NCBI GenBank assembly: GCA_026936335.1
Contig: JAPMXV010000037.1
Coordinates: 1 to 64,000 of the forward strand
Reading direction: 5' to 3'
Source of the DNA: Mantamonas sphyraenae STR306
Lineage: Eukaryota > Protista > CRuMs
DNA: 64,000 nucleotides
A model generated the notes under the pieces. The model searched no databases, was not told the DNA's origin, and saw only the letters and a list, made by a program, of their open reading frames with translations. Position numbers and translations under genes: made by a program. Shown here piece by piece: positions 34,978 through 60,277 of this stretch (its first letter is position 1; the number at the start of each line of letters is the position of its first letter).

Positions 34978-35945
34978 TCACCACTCGTCGTCCGAGTCCG
35001 AGTCATCAAACGCCTTTTTACGTTGAAACTGCGTCCATCCCCATGTTCCATGTACCCATTCCCCCTTTGTGTCAGCATACAACGCCCCTTCCGGCCATTT
35101 TTGGCGCGCTCCACCCTTTCCCGCCACCCTTACCGTAATTTTCGACGACCGAGACGAGTTGCTGCCCGAGAGATTCTCCAGCGCATCCACCAGCATCGCA
35201 TCCGTCACCTTTTTTGCCAGCCTGCCCGTCTGCGCCTGCTGCAGCAGGTTGTCTTCAATCTTCTGTGCTCGCTCGGGTTTCACCAGCCGGATGTTTGCCA
35301 CTGTCCTTCCTCGTGTCAGCACCCATTCACACACGTCACACCGCACGCATACCCGCCCCCTGTCGCCTCTCCCTCTTCTGCTGCAATCACCATGCTCTTC
35401 CGTCCACCATCCCCTCGGCAGACAGAAAAATCCCAAACTCACAGCGCGTTCGCGCTTCCGCCTCGAGGATCTGGCTCAGCAGAAACTCGCGTCCCTGCGC
35501 CTCCTCACTCCTGTGCAGTGCACGCAAAATCCCCTTTGTCAGTGTCCCCAAAGTTGGCGCTACCCGTCCCTCATTCTTGCCTCTCCACCCATGCCACTCC
35601 ACCTCCACCTACTTGGCCTGTTCCGACGATCCCTCCTATGTTGCGTGCGTTTCGCCCCGTTAGCACCTGGCCCACACCGCACGCAGCCCACCCCCCCCCC
35701 ACACACACACACATCACCAACTCCCATCACCAACTCCCATCACCAACTCCATTCTCTCCCTCCATGGTCTCTCACAACCTACTCCTCCCCCTCCAGACAA
35801 CTGGCTCAATTGCTTCTGAATCTCAGACTCGCTCTATGCCCATGTGTCAGCTCCACTGCAACCCATGAGCACCTTGCTCCGTACGTCCCTCTTCACCCCG
35901 GCCCTCAACCCTCCCTCCCACTCCTCGTCCCTCCCCACTCACCAT
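34978..35945 (-). CDS. PDCD5: Programmed cell death protein 5 (dsDNA-binding family), multi-exon
   Basis: Spliced model M|SESEIQKQLSQLSGGGG|EGSSEQAK|SEEAQGREFLLSQILEAEARTR|..ANIRLVKPERAQKIEDNLLQQAQTGRLAKKVTD..|FQRKKAFDDSDSDDEW. The 5' exons are less certain. Confidence 0.88.
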
Positions 35946-35995: not shown

Positions 35996-36946
35996 ATGGA
36001 CAAGCGCACGCTCCTGAGCGCCAACCTGAAGCTGCACGGCAGCTACGGTCTGGATGCTCCTGCTGTCCTTCGCAACCTCGCCTTTGCTGCCGTGGTCTGC
36101 GAGCTCATTGGCTGGGTACTCCCTGCCTTCATCAAGAACCAACCTGACGTCCTCCTTGTCTGCATCTCCCTCAGGTACAGCGGCATGTTCCTTCTTCTCT
36201 CCCTCCTCCTCATGGTCATTTCCTCCGTTTACGGCAAGTACCTCGAGCTCGACCTCCTCTTTGCCAAGCTCGGCCTCCTCGGCGACGAGACCGTTCTCGA
36301 CGTTGGATGCGGCAGGGGCATCGTCCTCCACAGTGCCGCAAAGCGACTCGACACAGGCAAAGCCTACGGCATCGACATCTTTGACAGCGGTGCTCAGAGC
36401 AACAACAGCGTCGAGAACGTACGTTCTGCTCTTTTGCCCTCCCCTCACTTCCCGCCGCGACCCACCCACCCGCTTCCCTTCCCTTTCATCGCTGTTCTCG
36501 CTGTACTGCCTGCACCCTCTGTACTCCCCACCTATGTTCAACGCCCCATTCCCCCAACACCTCCTCTCACCCAAACTCCACTGCTCCCCGCAACCACGCA
36601 GACACTTGCTACCAGCCTCGTCGAGGGCGTTGCTGACAAGGTCGACGTTCGCTACGGCGATGCACGCAGCCTTCCTTTCCGAGACGCAACCATGGACGTC
36701 GCTCTCAGCTGCCTCGTCTACCATAGGGTCCCGTCCAAAGATCGCCGCAAGGCCATCCAAGAGTTGTTCCGTGTCCTCCGCCCAGGAGGCCGTGTAGCCA
36801 TCGTCAACCTCTTCTGGGTCGCCTCCACTTACGACTCTCTCCTCCGCGACGTTGGCTTTGAACAAGTCTCCATGACTCCCTGGCACCTGCGCATGTACCC
36901 CCCGGTCCGAATCAACTACGCCACGAAACCCAAATCCGTCGCCTGA
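35996..36946 (+). CDS. Class I SAM-dependent methyltransferase with two N-terminal TM helices
   Basis: VLDVGCGRG motif I, YGIDIF, GDARSLPF and RVLRPGGR. One in-frame GTACGT...CGCAG intron at about 36419-36601. Confidence 0.88.
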   Translation: MDKRTLLSANLKLHGSYGLDAPAVLRNLAFAAVVCELIGWVLPAFIKNQPDVLLVCISLRYSGMFLLLSLLLMVISSVYGKYLELDLLFAKLGLLGDETVLDVGCGRGIVLHSAAKRLDTGKAYGIDIFDSGAQSNNSVENVRSALLPSPHFPPRPTHPLPFPFIAVLAVLPAPSVLPTYVQRPIPPTPPLTQTPLLPATTQTLATSLVEGVADKVDVRYGDARSLPFRDATMDVALSCLVYHRVPSKDRRKAIQELFRVLRPGGRVAIVNLFWVASTYDSLLRDVGFEQVSMTPWHLRMYPPVRINYATKPKSVA

Positions 36947-47760: not shown

Positions 47761-49399
47761 TCACGAGATCGAGGGCAGGCTGGGGATTTCAGAATCAAAG
47801 TGTTGGTCATTGGAGGAGCCTGCACCAGAGGAGGAAGAGGAGGAAGCGGCGGAAGACGAAGAAGTGCCTGCGGCCGTGACGCCTGTTTGCTTGTTGCCGT
47901 AGCGTCCGAGGAGGCCGCGCGAAGAGGAGCCTGTCGTGGCGGCCAGAGAGCGTGTGTCGACGCGGCCTGGCCCCGTGTACCAGGACGATTGGCCCTGCGT
48001 GTCGTCCTTGGACTGTTTGTAGTAAAGCTTGAGAGCCTTCTCGGCAATCTCCACCTTGCGCTCCCAGTTGCGCACCTTTTTCTCCAGCTCGTACTGCTCG
48101 GCGCGCTGCGCCACGTACTCGAGCACTTCGGGCACCTTGTACTCCTCTTGCTGCTGCTTGAGCTGTTTGTTGATAGATTCGGCCTTGTTGCGCTCCGTCG
48201 TCACCTTTTTGATGTCCTCCTGCACGCGTTTGACCGTGTCCCGCCGGATGTGGATTTCCTTGTCCAGCTTGCTCTGCTCGTTTGTCAGCCGGTTCAGCGT
48301 CTTCTTGTGGTTGTTGAGCATGTGCACCGTCTTGCCTGCCTCTTTCTTCAGATCCTGCACCTCTTTTTGCTTCTCTGCGTACTTTTCCTTGTACTGGTCG
48401 TTCTCGATCTTGAGCTGGTCAAAGTCGATGCCCTTCAGCGAGTCGTTCATCTCCTCCTTCTGCATCAGGTGGTTCTGATTCTTCTGGATGGCCTTGCGTA
48501 GCGACAACACACGCATGCGAAACTGTTCCTTGGTGTGGTCCTGCAAGTGTGTGTGTGTGTGTGTCGCCCGCACCAAGGGAAGTGGCGTCAGTTGCGAGGG
48601 CAAACGTGTGTGCGCATGGTACGCCCAGGCACGACGTGCCTACACCTGCGTGGCGTCCTCCACGCCTGTAACAGGCCCACACCTACCTTTGTCTTTTGCT
48701 TGTCCTCAAAAAACTTGATGATACGGTCGCCCGAGAAGCGTTCCGTGCGCGGGTTCCAGGCAGCCTGCACAATCTCGCGCTGAAAGTCCTCCTCATCTTT
48801 GTGCAATTGGGCCAGGCTGGTGGACGCCTCTTCCAGAGATGCCTGTGTGGTGTGTGGCCCACATGTGCGGTGGCGTGTGAGCATTGTGTGTGCGTGGCGT
48901 GCAGAGAGCGAGTGGACGACGCTCGCCTAACGGTCGACCTGTGCATCAGCGGCTCGAGCCGGCTTACCTTGATTGTTTCGATCTCCTCTTGCCGTTTGGA
49001 GATGGTCAGTTCGCGCAGTTCAATCAGCTTGTCACACTCCGAGGTGGCAATCTCGATCTTCTTTTCAGTGGCCAGCAGTTGTTGCTGGCGGACCCCCTTC
49101 TTCTTTCGTCCCCGCCTGCTCTTGTCGTCCTCCATCATCTCTGTGAGTTCGTTGGGAGACAGTCCCTGCAAATACTGCTGCAGCAGCATGTTCTCCTTCA
49201 AGACCCGCTCATTCTCGCTAAACAGCCGATGCAGCTCCTCCTTTGCTGCAGCCGCTCCTGAACTTGCGCGTGACCTGCAAGCATGTGTCAGCATGGGGAG
49301 TGCATGTGTGGGTGGGTGGGTGGGTGTGTGCAATGACAATACGCAACAGGCTAGTGAAGGTGCACGCATGTGTGGCATGTTTGGTGGGTTTACTCACAT
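47761..49399 (-). CDS. CCDC113: Cilia/flagella-associated coiled-coil protein CCDC113 (CFAP263, DUF4201)
   Basis: QKEEMNDSLKGIDFDQLKIEN, YKVPEVLEYV and WERKVEIAE. Four exons; the start codon is split AT|G by intron 49397-49275. Confidence 0.88.
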
Positions 49400-52315: not shown

Positions 52316-52687
52316 GCCAACAAATCCCATTATTCCGTTCGCCCGTTTTGCGCTTGGCGCAACCAGTCCCCACTCTCCTTGCCTTGGGTTCCAGTCTCCC
52401 CAACCGACCACACCCTCCTCATCGCCATTTCCCAGCTGAGCACGTGCCTGTCCTTCTCTGTCAAGAAGATTTGACCACGGTGCACGGCAAATCAAAACTT
52501 GCGAGCATCCAACAACCACCCAACCATGATCATCATCGTCATCATCATCATCATCAACACGTGACGTTCATCCAATAATTCGTCCATTTCGTTCCCTTCC
52601 ATGCTGTACATCAATCATCCCCGTTGTCTCCCCCTTGTCCTTCGCCGTTGCCATCCTGCTCGTCCCCTCACGCATCCGCCTCGCTCT

Positions 52688-53941
<1,254 letters not shown>

Positions 53942-54066
53942 TCACCTTCCTGCCGCCCTTCCTTCACACAGCAACGCAACACATCACCTTCCCCAAAAAA
54001 ACCATCCTCAGGCCGAGCATGCACGCAATGTCCAACCGTCTCGGCTACGCAAGCTGCGCTTTCAAT

Positions 54067-55986: not shown

Positions 55987-56383
55987 GCACAGACCGAGCG
56001 ACAGACCGCGTGACCCCCTTCCTGCAATATGATCCCAACAATGCACCTGTCACGTGGTCGTCCATCATCTCCCTTCCTGTTCCCCGTCAGCATTGGTCTT
56101 GCTCGAAAACACCGCCGAAACTTCCTGAGCCTTCCGCCGAACGCACGCCAACCCGCTCCCGCTCATCCCCATCCATGCAAGGTGTGTTGTGGTTGAAAGC
56201 GTTGGTTGGTTTTAATGACCCCAGGGTTGTGTGTGTGTCTCTCTCTCTTCCTCTCCCTAGCTCGATGGTTCCAGCACAAACGGAGCGCACCCGCCCCGTT
56301 TGCTCGTCACTTCATCAAAACATCTCTTCCCTGAACTCCCAATCAGTGCGGCTTCGCCAGCAGACCTCGACTGATTACTCGTC

Positions 56384-58378
56384 TTAGTCCACCTCCTCCA
56401 CCTGCGGGCCGTCGCTGCTGTTGCTGCTGCCGCCAGCTGCTCCGGCGTCGAAACCGCCAAAGCCGCCTGCGCCTCCAGCTCCACCAGCGCCAGGGAATCC
56501 ACCGGCTCCGCCCTGCTGACCAGCGTACAGCTTGCTCATGATGGGCATTGCCTTCTCCTCCAGCTCCTTCTGCTGGTACTCGTACTCCTCCTTCGTCGCC
56601 GTCTGGTTGTTCTCCAGCCACTCGATCGTCTCCTTGATCACACCGTCCAGCGTGTTCACGTCGGCCTCCTCCAGCTTCTCCTTCACCTGCGGCTCCTGCA
56701 GCGAGTTGCGCAGGCCGTACGCGTAGCTCTCCAGCCCGTTGCGTGCTGCCACCGTGTTGCGCACCTCCTCGTCCTCTGCCTTGCGCTCCTCGGCCTCCTT
56801 CACCATGCGCTCGATGTCCTCGTCGCTCAGGCGGTCGCGGTTGTTCTCGATCTTGATGTTCTGGCTCTTGCCCGTGCTCTTCTCCGAAGCCGTCACGTGC
56901 ATGATACCGTTTGCATCCACCTCGAACGTCACCTCAATCTGAGGCTGTCCGCGCGGCATCGGCGGGATGCCCGTCAGGTCAAACTTGCCCAGCAGGTTGT
57001 TGTCTGCCGTGCGTGCGCGCTCACCCTCGTAGATCTGGATGCTCACCGCAGGCTGGTTGTCCTGTGCTGTGCTGAACGTCTGCGACTTCTTGCACGGCAC
57101 CTGCGTGTTGCGGTCAATGATGTTTGCCATCATGCCACCCATCGTCTCGATACCAAGCGACAGCGGAGTCACGTCCACCAGCAGCACCTGCGACAGGTCC
57201 TCGCCGCCCTGGTCCGTCAGCACGGCTGCCTGCACAGCTGCGCCGTACGCCACAGCCTCGTCCGGGTTGATGCCCTTGTGCAGCTCCTTGCCGTTGAAAA
57301 ACTCGCTCAGCAGGGACTGGATCTTCGGGATACGCGTAGATCCACCCACAAGCACAACCTCGTCCACGCTGCGCTTGTCCAGCTTGGCGTCCTTCAGCAC
57401 ACGAGCAACCGGGTCCAGGCACGAGCGGAACAGGTCCGAGCACAGCTCCTCGAAGCGTGCGCGCGACAGGCTCGTGTAAAAGTCGATGCCGTCGTACAGG
57501 GCGTCCACCTCGATCTGTGTCGTCGTGGCAGACGACAGAGCGCGCTTGGCGCTCTCAGCTGCCGTGCGCAGACGGCGCAGCGAGCGTGCGCTCTCCGTCA
57601 GGTCCGCTCCGCGGTTCTTGCGCTTAAACTCCTTCACCAGGTGGTCCACCACGCGGTTGTCAAAGTCCTCACCACCCAGATGCGTGTCGCCTGCCGTGGC
57701 CTTCACCTCAAAGAAGCCCTCGTCCACGCTCAGCAGAGACACATCAAACGTACCTCCTCCCAGATCAAAGATGAGGATGTTCTTCTCTCCCTCGTTGTTG
57801 TCCATCTTGTCCAGACCGTATGCCAGCGCAGCTGCCGTCGGCTCGTTGATGATGCGCAGCACGTTCAGCCCAGCGATGCGTGCCGCATCCTTTGTAGCCA
57901 GACGCTGGGCGTCGTTGAAGTACGCCGGCACAGTGATCACTGCGTCCTTCACGTCTCCGCCCAGGTACTCCTCTGCGTCGCTCTTGAGCTTGCCCAGCAC
58001 CATCGACGAAATCTCCTCCGCCTGGTACTCCTTCTTCTGTCCGTGCGACTCCACCTCGATCAGAGGCTTGCCGTCGCTGTTTGCCTTGACCTTGAACGGC
58101 CAGTGCTGCAGATCGCCCTGCACCGTCTCGTCCTGGAACTTGCGTCCAATCAGACGCTTGGCGTCGAAAACGGTGTTGTGCGGGTTGCGTGCAATTTGGT
58201 TCTTTGCTGCCATGCCCACAAGCGTCTCACCGTCCGTGAACGCCACGTACGAAGGTGTCGTACGCTGACCCAGGTTGTTCGGCACAATCTCCACCTTTCC
58301 GTTGCGCCACACACCCACGCACGAGTTGGTCGTGCCCAGATCAATGCCAATTGCAAGTCCGCTTCCAGTGCTGCTCAT
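56384..58378 (-). CDS. HSP70: Cytosolic Hsp70
   Basis: [36 protein letters not shown] and C-terminal GPQVEEVD. Confidence 0.99.
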
Positions 58379-58580
58379 TTTCTTGTGTGTTCCTGACTGC
58401 TTTTTCTCTGTGTATAGCGATGATGTGTTGGTATGATGTCTCTGTAACTCTCTCTCTCTCTCTCTGTAGTCCTGTCTCGCTTGGACTTGGTTTCCTCTCA
58501 CTCACAGAAGTTGGGTTGGTCGTCTTGGTGCATCCGCGGTCCGCGCTTTTTGTACCCTGCGCTTCCACCCAAACTTTCCG

Positions 58581-58600
58581 CGAAGCGAACATTCGCGACG
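58581..58600. promoter_or_regulatory. Candidate heat-shock element upstream of Hsp70
   Basis: cGAAg-cGAAcaTTCgcGACg, about 210 nt upstream of the Hsp70 ATG; matches nGAAnnTTCnnGAAn with one mismatch. Confidence 0.5.
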
Positions 58601-58995
58601 CCGGATTCCGCCCGTCCACACACATGTAGCCCCTTGTGTCGATGCACATGCACCTCACACCACTCTCTGTGCCCTGTCCACCCCTGTGTACTTCTCCCAC
58701 TCCTATGCGTGCCCCATGTCGTCTCCAATCTGCCAAAATCCAACATCCGGAAACTGCCTTCAGCGAAAAAAAAGTTCCGTTCTGCATTCGTCAAATTCGC
58801 CACGCCCCCATCTGGCCTCCATCCACATCATCGCCCTCCCCACATCCCCTACCACCCTTCCACCACCCTTCCACCACGCTCATCCCGCCCGTGTCAAACG
58901 GCAGGACACGTGCAATCGCATCGCCCCCATCCACCCCCCATCCACACTCTCTACCACATCCTCATATCCCCCCACACTCCTCTTCCTTCCCCTTG

Positions 58996-59855
58996 CTACT
59001 CCTCCACCTTCACTTCCATGTCCTCCACCTCGGGCTTCGGCGCCGCCGCAATGTCCCGCGCCCGGCTCACCTCGGCCCCAGCCTTGCTCGCCTTCTCCTG
59101 CACCATCGCCTCCCGTGCCTCCTGTGCGTTTGCCATCCTCGTCTCCAGAGACACCCTTCGGTTCTCCGCCTCCTCGTCCTGTGCATTCTTTGCCGCCTCC
59201 GCCTTCGCCTTGGCCGTCTCCACCTCCTGGCTTGCTTTGCTCTGCTTTGCCGCCAGCTGGGCGTTCCTGTTCTCCTCAGCCATCGCCAGACGCTCATCCA
59301 GTGCCTCTCGGTTCTCCTTGGCCCACTCCTCCACTCCTTCCTTCTGCTGCTTCGCCTTTGCAATCGAACGCTCCACCTCTGCCCCTGCCTTGGCTGCCCG
59401 CTCGTTCTGCAGAGACTGTCCTCACAACCGTCCATCCCGCATCCCATGTGTCCCATACGTGTGTCCCCATGGTCCATCACCGCCCACACCGTCCCAATCC
59501 GTGTCAGTTTCTCATCCCGTCCCGTCCCTTTCTCCTGTCCCGCCCTTTCCTGACATGGCCACACGTCAACCAAAAATGGCGCCAAACAACTCTCTGACAA
59601 CTCTCTGTCTCCCGCCACCAACTTGCCCACCCCTCCCCTCTTCTGTCTCCCCATCCCTTCCCCACCTACCTCCCTGCGTGCTGCTGCTGCTGCCAGCTTT
59701 GCCTCGATTTCCTCCTCGCTTGACGGCGGGCTTCGCTGTTGCGACTCCAGCCGCTCCTTCACGGGGCTCACAAACTCGCTTGCGTCCCCTTCCTTGAACA
59801 GCTCGTCAAACACGATGCAGCTGCCCTTCTCCGTCTCTGTTACTTCCACCTTCAT
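58996..59855 (-). CDS. Stathmin-like protein with three helical repeats
   Basis: Exon 1 at 59855-59670 (MKVEVTETEKGSCIVFDELF..SPVK..SPPSSEEEIEAKLAAAAARRE), intron 59669-59416, exon 2 (..LDERLAMAEENRNAQLAAK..LETRMANAQEAREAMVQEK). Confidence 0.75.
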
Positions 59856-60277
59856 GTTGTTGTTCTCTGTGCTCACTGTCCCCACCCACGTCTCCCGTGT
59901 CAGCCTCCTCTCCTTGTACACGCCCCCACGGATTTTGCGTTGCGGTGGCCATTTTTCCGCCTCAGCCGTTTCTTGTCCATTTTTTCTCCGCCCCTCCTCC
60001 ACTCTTCTCCCACTGCACACGTCGACATGCACCATCAACACACCACAGCACACATGGTCATCCCTCGCGTGCGCTACCGTGCTGCTACCCATGCAATCTT
60101 CATCGGCCATCGACCACCAAACTCACCCGACATGGTTGCTCTTTCTTCTTGTCTTGGTCTGCTGTGCGCACCACCCATCACGCCCATGCAAGTACCATCA
60201 AGACAAGCGTTTCTCCCTCTCCACCTACTCATCGTGTTCGCATACGTCGTCGTTTTCATTTTCGGGACTGGTGTCAT

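Follow-up and report, generated by a model that had tools for sequence, protein, structure and literature searches.

Conjoined genes, or transcription-induced chimeras, are known from mammals, TWE-PRIL and Kua-UEV being examples, and the switch between the secreted and membrane forms of immunoglobulin mu is one between intronic polyadenylation and splicing. For 42 introns of Yarrowia lipolytica, the 5′ splice site follows one of the start-codon nucleotides, A, T or G (PMC13309789). Overlapping transcription in compacted genomes, namely those of microsporidia and nucleomorphs, is the subject of work cited in PMC6009652 and PMC3629993. Here we analyse a minus-strand locus of Mantamonas sphyraenae at which a PCIF1-family gene, encoding a cap m6Am methyltransferase-like protein, is followed head-to-tail by the gene for CCDC113, and at which both genes may use the same octamer, ATGTGAGT. 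The stretch of DNA analysed, referred to below as the window, covers the first 64 kb of contig C37 and has a GC content near 59%. Mantamonas belongs to CRuMs, a deep-branching eukaryotic group near some of the positions proposed for the eukaryotic root. We consider it reasonably probable that CCDC113 has a true start-codon intron and a promoter of its own, located inside the PCIF1 coding tail.

The assembly used here comprises 25,061,354 bases in 78 contigs. The published M. sphyraenae genome is described as 25.06 Mb in 78 contigs with a GC content of 59.19%, and as holding 9,416 genes with a mean length of 2,282 bp, most of them mono-exonic (PMC10492846).

Results

The PCIF1-family coding sequence occupies positions 51061-49394 of the minus strand as an intronless open reading frame (ORF) of 555 amino acids followed by TGA. 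Its ORF (51061-49397) matches PF12237 (PCIF1_WW) with an E value of 3.7e-54 over residues 218-375, and the last exon of the downstream gene matches PF13870 (CCDC113_CCDC96_CC) with an E value of 7.3e-35, so that the identities of PCIF1 and CCDC113 proposed in an earlier sequence-only reading hold. On the minus strand PCIF1 ends with AGC ATG TGA, the ATG at 49399-49397 and the TGA at 49396-49394, exactly to the base as that reading had placed them. The octamer ATGTGAGT (49399-49392, minus strand) thus comprises the last sense codon and the stop of PCIF1, a donor sequence AT|GTGAGT and, were the donor used, the first two bases of the CCDC113 ATG. Its GTGAGT hexamer (49397-49392) is the one used by intron 3 of RPL10, and between 49700 and 49392 the PCIF1 tail has no other GTRRG donor-like site. 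An acceptor ttgcag|G was also found where it had been claimed, its AG occupying 49276-49275 and the exon opening with the G at 49274. Together these signals delimit a candidate spliceosomal intron of 123 nt (49397-49275, minus strand) in phase 2 inside the CCDC113 start codon. As had been asserted, splicing it out in silico rebuilds the ATG in frame, the product reading M-SRASSGAAAAKEEL (ATG TCA CGC ...).

A CTGAC branch-point motif, which the sequence-only reading did not mention, is present at 49291-49287 of the minus strand, its A lying 13 nt ahead of the acceptor AG. By the sequence tests applied, the stretch 49397-49275 has the donor, branch motif, YAG acceptor, length and non-coding character of a U2-type GT-AG intron, and its boundaries (AT|GT ... 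AG|G TCA CGC) split the start codon in frame with the conserved CCDC113 block. The PCIF1 stop TGA corresponds to positions +2 to +4 of the candidate intron, within which the PCIF1 3′ untranslated region (UTR) would lie in whole or in part. Upstream, the last 132 nt of the PCIF1 coding sequence (49531-49400, minus strand) are A/G-rich, with three T and no ATG in any frame. An octamer acting as Met-stop, donor and split start, with no intergenic DNA and with the CCDC113 transcription start site (TSS) in the Lys-coding tail of PCIF1, is a reading that sequence statistics support well.

Beyond the acceptor, CCDC113 can be followed on the minus strand through three exons. The exon at 49274-48968 carries the G of the ATG and 102 codons and is 49% identical to residues 66-160 of the CCDC113 protein of Mantamonas plastica; intron 2 (48967-48843, 125 nt, GTAAGC...CACAG) lies between exons that both align to CCDC113 proteins; the next exon (48842-48687, 52 codons) is 46% identical to M. 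plastica residues 161-212 and aligns to 20 further homologues; intron 3 (48686-48541, 146 nt, GTAGGT...TTGCAG, with CTGAC present) is supported by homology; and the last exon (48540-47761, 259 codons plus TGA) is 58% identical to the M. plastica protein. Each exon served as a separate query, and for local BLAST an M was placed before exon 1. The best named matches of the last exon are CCDC113/CFAP263 and not CCDC96, and the closest relative of the window gene is the transcript-derived M. plastica protein (EP00003). An exhaustive HMMER search with exon 1 recovered M. plastica CCDC113 (E 4.4e-17) and one other weak match, of 1008 amino acids, which was considered as a possible fusion and set aside as a low-complexity repeat protein.

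Homology of the model to other CCDC113 proteins begins at its residues 12-14. The spliced start would place 11 residues ahead of the conserved helix, where Diacronema and another homologue have 12 each, and M. plastica reads M-N-SRSSS where the window gene reads M-SRASS. The M. plastica protein is a free-standing ORF of 442 amino acids, called complete, with 47 in-frame codons upstream that show no Lys-rich, PCIF1-like tail. Spliced-leader trans-splicing was considered and found no support, the M. plastica CCDC113 leader being long and gene-specific. The window holds the only CCDC113 gene of the genome, and a second PF13870 gene, likely CCDC96, is found elsewhere. In Tetrahymena, CCDC113 and CCDC96 are partners in a complex of the axoneme (PMC7987202). 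Since CCDC113 is present in a single gene and a CCDC96-like partner is encoded elsewhere, a free-standing CCDC113 product is expected.

After the PCIF1 TGA the frame is open across all 123 nt, and it contains three in-frame ATGs, both points absent from the sequence-only reading. These weigh against a start-codon intron and, standing in an open frame at 49378, 49369 and 49294, they keep the split-start claim probabilistic. The claim that a single octamer combines Met-stop, donor and split start with zero intergenic DNA was borne out as regards sequence signals and statistics, and qualified as regards the start, for which a contiguous ATG is a second candidate. That ATG, at 49294-49292 of the minus strand, would read MLTHACRSRASS; the further ATGs lie at 49378-49376 and 49369-49367 (ORF 48683..49378). 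Under this alternative, the main rival, there would be no start-codon intron, and the 123 nt would serve as a CA-rich spacer and 5′ leader within which CCDC113 is transcribed, with translation starting at ATG 49294 or, less likely, at 49378 or 49369. The octamer would then be a coincidence, or would matter only for stray read-through RNA. A start at 49294 would place 18 residues ahead of the conserved helix, inside the homologue range of 12-21; it would also confine the TSS to a stretch of about 100 nt, and ATG 49294 lies at the branch site. We regard a contiguous start as rather unlikely, in view also of the statistics and of the other genes described below.

Sequence statistics were taken from the window plus 200 kb more of contig C37, 264 kb in all (528 kb counting both strands), and coding character was scored as a codon-usage log-likelihood (LLR) per codon trained on long ORFs. 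The 123 nt of the candidate intron compare with 125 and 146 nt for CCDC113 introns 2 and 3 and fall in the range of the checked introns (61-192 nt). Like introns 2 and 3 the candidate is C-rich with CA runs (39% C, 15% G), and it is the most G-poor of the three, the two internal introns having 25% and 31% G. Its in-frame LLR of -0.12 per codon is in the same range as those of introns 2 and 3, as against 0.39-0.46 for the three CCDC113 exons and 0.27 for the PCIF1 tail. By this score the PCIF1 tail is coding sequence and the 123-nt stretch is not, which disfavours starts at 49378 and 49369.

The motif CTGAC occurs once per 1,155 nt and is found 6-58 nt upstream of only 3.7% of 13,327 YAG sites. 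It is present in most homology-verified introns, including introns 1 and 2 of RPL10, those of a GNL1-like gene and CCDC113 intron 3. The sequence ATGTRAGY occurs 19 times in 528 kb. From its count, the CTGAC rate and the requirement for an in-phase |G, the chance of finding a donor, CTGAC and an in-phase YAG|G together was estimated at about 1e-4 per gene, or about one false case per genome of 9,416 genes, and this is the co-occurrence that a contiguous start would have to attribute to chance. The triple use of the octamer is itself largely automatic, since every AT|GTGAGT or AT|GTAAGT donor spells ATG TGA or ATG TAA; the stop directly after the ATG comes free with an AT|GTRAGT donor, and the coincidence that remains is the arrival of the PCIF1 frame in phase, a 1-in-3 event.

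Split start codons also occur elsewhere in this genome, which disfavours a contiguous start at CCDC113. The gene for RPL10 (contig C42, positions 505060-505589) begins AT|GTATGT and continues with a 192-nt intron, an 8-nt microexon GGGACGCC, a second intron and an exon beginning GCCCCGCT, the layout being AT|GTATGT ... cag|GGGACGCC|gtatgt ... tag|GCCCCGCT. Both the split start and the microexon are required, since the near-universal N-terminus MGRRPARCY can be built in no other way, and with RPL10 the occurrence of split start codons in M. sphyraenae may be taken as verified. RPL10 has no other usable start, whereas CCDC113 has its three in-frame ATGs. A GNL1-like GTPase gene on contig C37 (164032-163969, with MMR_HSR1 downstream) reads AT|GTAAGG, followed by a 61-nt intron with CTGAC and the acceptor caacag|G; this is probably another split start codon, at which intron retention would read ATG TAA.

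Three further observations concern gene starts. Only about 116 nt separate RPL10 from the start of a divergent gene upstream. On the minus strand of the window, at 35836-35945, an apparent intron follows straight after the start ATG at 35945 (ATG|GTGAGT ... CTGAC ... catag|); the plus-strand neighbour starts divergently at 35996, about 50 nt away. A 12-mer common to the RPL10 leader and the PCIF1 tail, AAAAGCAAAAAG, showed no association with gene starts and was discarded.

The close packing of PCIF1 and CCDC113 was compared with the spacing of other genes. On contig C37 the stops of convergent long ORFs are 8-100 nt apart (for example 8498/8538, 37585/37624 and 47672/47761), and one pair overlaps by 9 nt, which implies that 3′ UTRs are tiny or overlap the opposite gene. 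Among tandem ORFs many touch or overlap. Given this context the abutment of PCIF1 and CCDC113 is unsurprising. Between positions -6 and +150 of the stops of long ORFs (C37:1-264000) the most enriched hexamer is AATGAA, with 19 occurrences observed against 2.0 expected; its enrichment after ORF ends is 9.6-fold and that of AATGGA 4.2-fold. AATGRA is, however, found at only 12 of 40 convergent ends, and is a frequent rather than a universal gene-end motif. AATGA peaks within 25 nt of the stop and often supplies its TGA. The stop TGA ends 81 of 108 long open frames, partly as GTGAG donors end them. From the PCIF1 tail to the end of CCDC113 a single AATGRA is present, an AATGGA at 47699-47694 of the minus strand, 62 nt past the CCDC113 stop.

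Several findings weigh against a start-codon intron and are in part points for a contiguous start. No recognisable gene-end motif (AATGRA) follows the PCIF1 stop, although this says little when only 12 of the 40 convergent ends have one. 'AT' is enriched just 1.26-fold before GTRAGT in the 264 kb, no visible excess at this sample size. A position weight matrix of start context, built from 66 long ORFs, gives its lowest score to the spliced ATG (-1.7, as against 0.5 to 3.6) and slightly favours the contiguous ATGs, but it has too little power to settle the matter. It is normal in this genome for a contiguous ATG to be preceded directly by a CA-rich leader, typically with C at -1, as at actin and at a BTB gene. 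ATGTGAG[TC] ends two other long minus-strand ORFs (C37:126060-126065 and 253722-253727), the next gene in both cases being convergent and not tandem. A copy of ATGTGAGT at C37:191649 was tried as a second split-start case and rejected, since the gene there has a contiguous ATG and carries the octamer in its leader. From these two convergent ORF ends and the one leader it follows that the octamer exists without a split-start function. Finally, no M. sphyraenae protein was present in the collections searched, whether by word searches with CCDC113 exon 1, the last exon and PCIF1 or by HMMER with exon 1. As a separate observation, ATG TGA G[TC] ends 3 of 108 long ORFs where about 0.2 would be expected, an excess that may be fortuitous or may reflect a preference for ATG TGA at gene ends.

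The PCIF1 product was compared with its relatives, 447 in total, the domain content being read for the 120 listed. It keeps the NPPF motif, of which N306, P307 and F309 are invariant across the alignment, while P308 is replaced by His (NPHF) in a Fabomonas homologue. This homologue, from Fabomonas tropica, was first read as the PCIF1 of M. plastica; look-up gave its true source, and an argument that had drawn on a separately ending M. plastica PCIF1 was dropped. The window protein lacks the N-terminal WW domain that binds the phosphorylated CTD of Pol II, PF00397 giving no match at E <= 0.01, and PF00397 is present in one of the 120 listed homologues and absent from the other 119. An exact look-up found the window PCIF1 product not to be on record. 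Two more loci with PCIF1_WW matches, at C17:152173-152658 and C41:150327-150812, have identical scores (E 7.6e-46) and open frames of 444 and 445 codons, and represent either a duplicated paralogue or a region present twice. Because of these loci, the WW-less, long-tailed PCIF1 of the window is not the sole family member.

The conserved region of PCIF1 stops near residue 430 and is followed by a Lys/Ser-rich C-terminal tail of about 125 amino acids. Since the tail is the longest in the alignment and its last ~30 residues are unmatched in the homologues compared, it would fit an ORF merely running on to its neighbour's splice site.

In the sequence-only reading a splice-controlled, in-frame fusion of the two genes had been put forward as a possible switch. 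In such a model, polyadenylation in the intron would compete with splicing and give PCIF1, CCDC113 and a functional 968-aa fusion in regulated proportions. The splice does join the two frames in silico (555 + 413 = 968 amino acids), PCIF1 pre-mRNA always contains the donor, read-through is conceivable since no AATGRA follows the PCIF1 stop before CCDC113 ends, and the two further PCIF1-family loci could slightly relax the constraint on the window copy and so free it. The missing motif means little, however, given its frequency at convergent ends, the frame match is the 1-in-3 event noted above and the Met-stop is intrinsic to the donor, and nothing else favours a functional fusion. PF13870 is absent from all 120 listed of the 447 PCIF1 relatives, although their lengths, up to 971 amino acids, cover that of the fusion, and the 47 codons upstream of M. 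plastica CCDC113 lack the PCIF1 Lys tail. Nor is it easy to see what a protein would do in which a Lys-rich, possibly nuclear-targeting tail precedes CCDC113, an axonemal coiled coil and the partner of CCDC96 (PMC7987202). On conservation of the chimera or of the adjacency in relatives, two metagenome scans found nothing. We consider this model improbable. That 3′-end formation in the 123-nt intron would be balanced against splicing so as to set the amount of a methyltransferase-CCDC113 fusion, with one 8-nt element making the choice, appears very improbable indeed. The predicted junction peptide of a fusion would be SMSRASSGAAAAK (context VKRSMSRASSG), whereas the N-terminus from the split start would be (M)SRASSGAAAAK.

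A last alternative is a single constitutively spliced gene, always giving one PCIF1-CCDC113 protein, in which the stop would be seen only in unspliced RNA. It would agree with a CCDC113 for which no contiguous start is forced and with the lack of a gene-end motif after PCIF1, but it is scarcely credible when set against the sole CCDC113 gene with its separate CCDC96-like partner and against the free-standing 442-aa protein of M. plastica. In addition, PCIF1 homologues end soon after the domain or, as in Fabomonas, with a similar Lys-rich tail, and no protein with both PF12237 and PF13870 is found among the 120 listed of the 447 relatives.

Two other features of this part of the contig were noted. 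Actin is present in three copies of about 97% identity (window 52506-53970; C37:72824-74284 and 74857-76317), and an Hsp70-containing segment (window 56152-60000+) is duplicated about 22 kb away (C37:77994-81833) with 99.3% identity. The actin/Hsp70 region is a recent segmental duplication, and PCIF1-CCDC113 lies outside it.

Discussion

In the explanation favoured here, a start-codon intron in CCDC113, the locus would consist of two separate genes packed head-to-tail with zero spacer in a 25-Mb genome. Transcription of CCDC113 would begin within the final ~130 nt of PCIF1 coding sequence, and its first exon would be a short, ATG-free leader ending in AT. Removal of the 123-nt intron (GTGAGT ... 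CTGAC ... TTGCAG|G) would then allow the G of the next exon to complete the ATG, and a CCDC113 protein of 414 amino acids would be translated. PCIF1 would be made from RNA that lacks the acceptor or is left unspliced, most simply through cleavage and polyadenylation within the 123 nt. PCIF1 transcripts that reach past 49275 might give the in-frame 968-aa chimera, as an occasional by-product rather than a designed switch. Taken together, our verdict is that the locus is a by-product of genome compaction, a case of extreme packing.

At present the locus is a curiosity in line with patterns seen across this genome. If the split start is real, it would mark an extreme of nuclear gene packing in a free-living eukaryote, the promoter and 5′ exon of one gene lying in the coding tail of its neighbour and a splice site doubling as a stop, and it would offer a test case for separating 3′-end formation from splicing on shared bases. 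Gene predictors would in that event fuse the two genes or truncate CCDC113. The start-codon introns, microexons and abutting genes of Mantamonas also bear on what early eukaryotic genomes could tolerate.

Start-codon introns, overlapping transcription and conjoined genes are already known; what would set the present locus apart is an upstream stop inside the splice site of a downstream start-codon intron, with zero spacer. The start-codon introns of Yarrowia likewise have their donor in or right after the ATG, their retention leads to an immediate stop (ATG then TRR), and they are found in an intron-poor genome with introns crowded at the 5′ ends of genes. Their first exon, however, lies in an ordinary 5′ UTR, whereas here it would lie within upstream coding sequence, in the tail of PCIF1, and the PCIF1 stop would form part of the splice site. 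As in conjoined genes, the genes are in tandem on the same strand and splicing, here in silico, removes the upstream stop and joins the ORFs in frame; the known conjoined genes are separated by kilobases and are joined by skipping the last exon of the upstream one, while here the donor contains the stop and there is no spacer. The comparison with immunoglobulin mu applies if PCIF1 RNA ends in the intron, in which case cleavage and splicing would compete and set the C-terminus. In the mu switch both products come from one gene and regulation has been demonstrated, whereas the present case would join two unrelated genes. A further parallel is with microsporidia and nucleomorphs, where the loss of intergenic DNA pushes promoters, UTRs and termination signals into adjacent genes. 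The genomes concerned belong to parasites or endosymbionts and measure 0.4-3 Mb; here, in the 25-Mb genome of a free-living flagellate, the overlap takes in a splice site and the boundaries of both reading frames.

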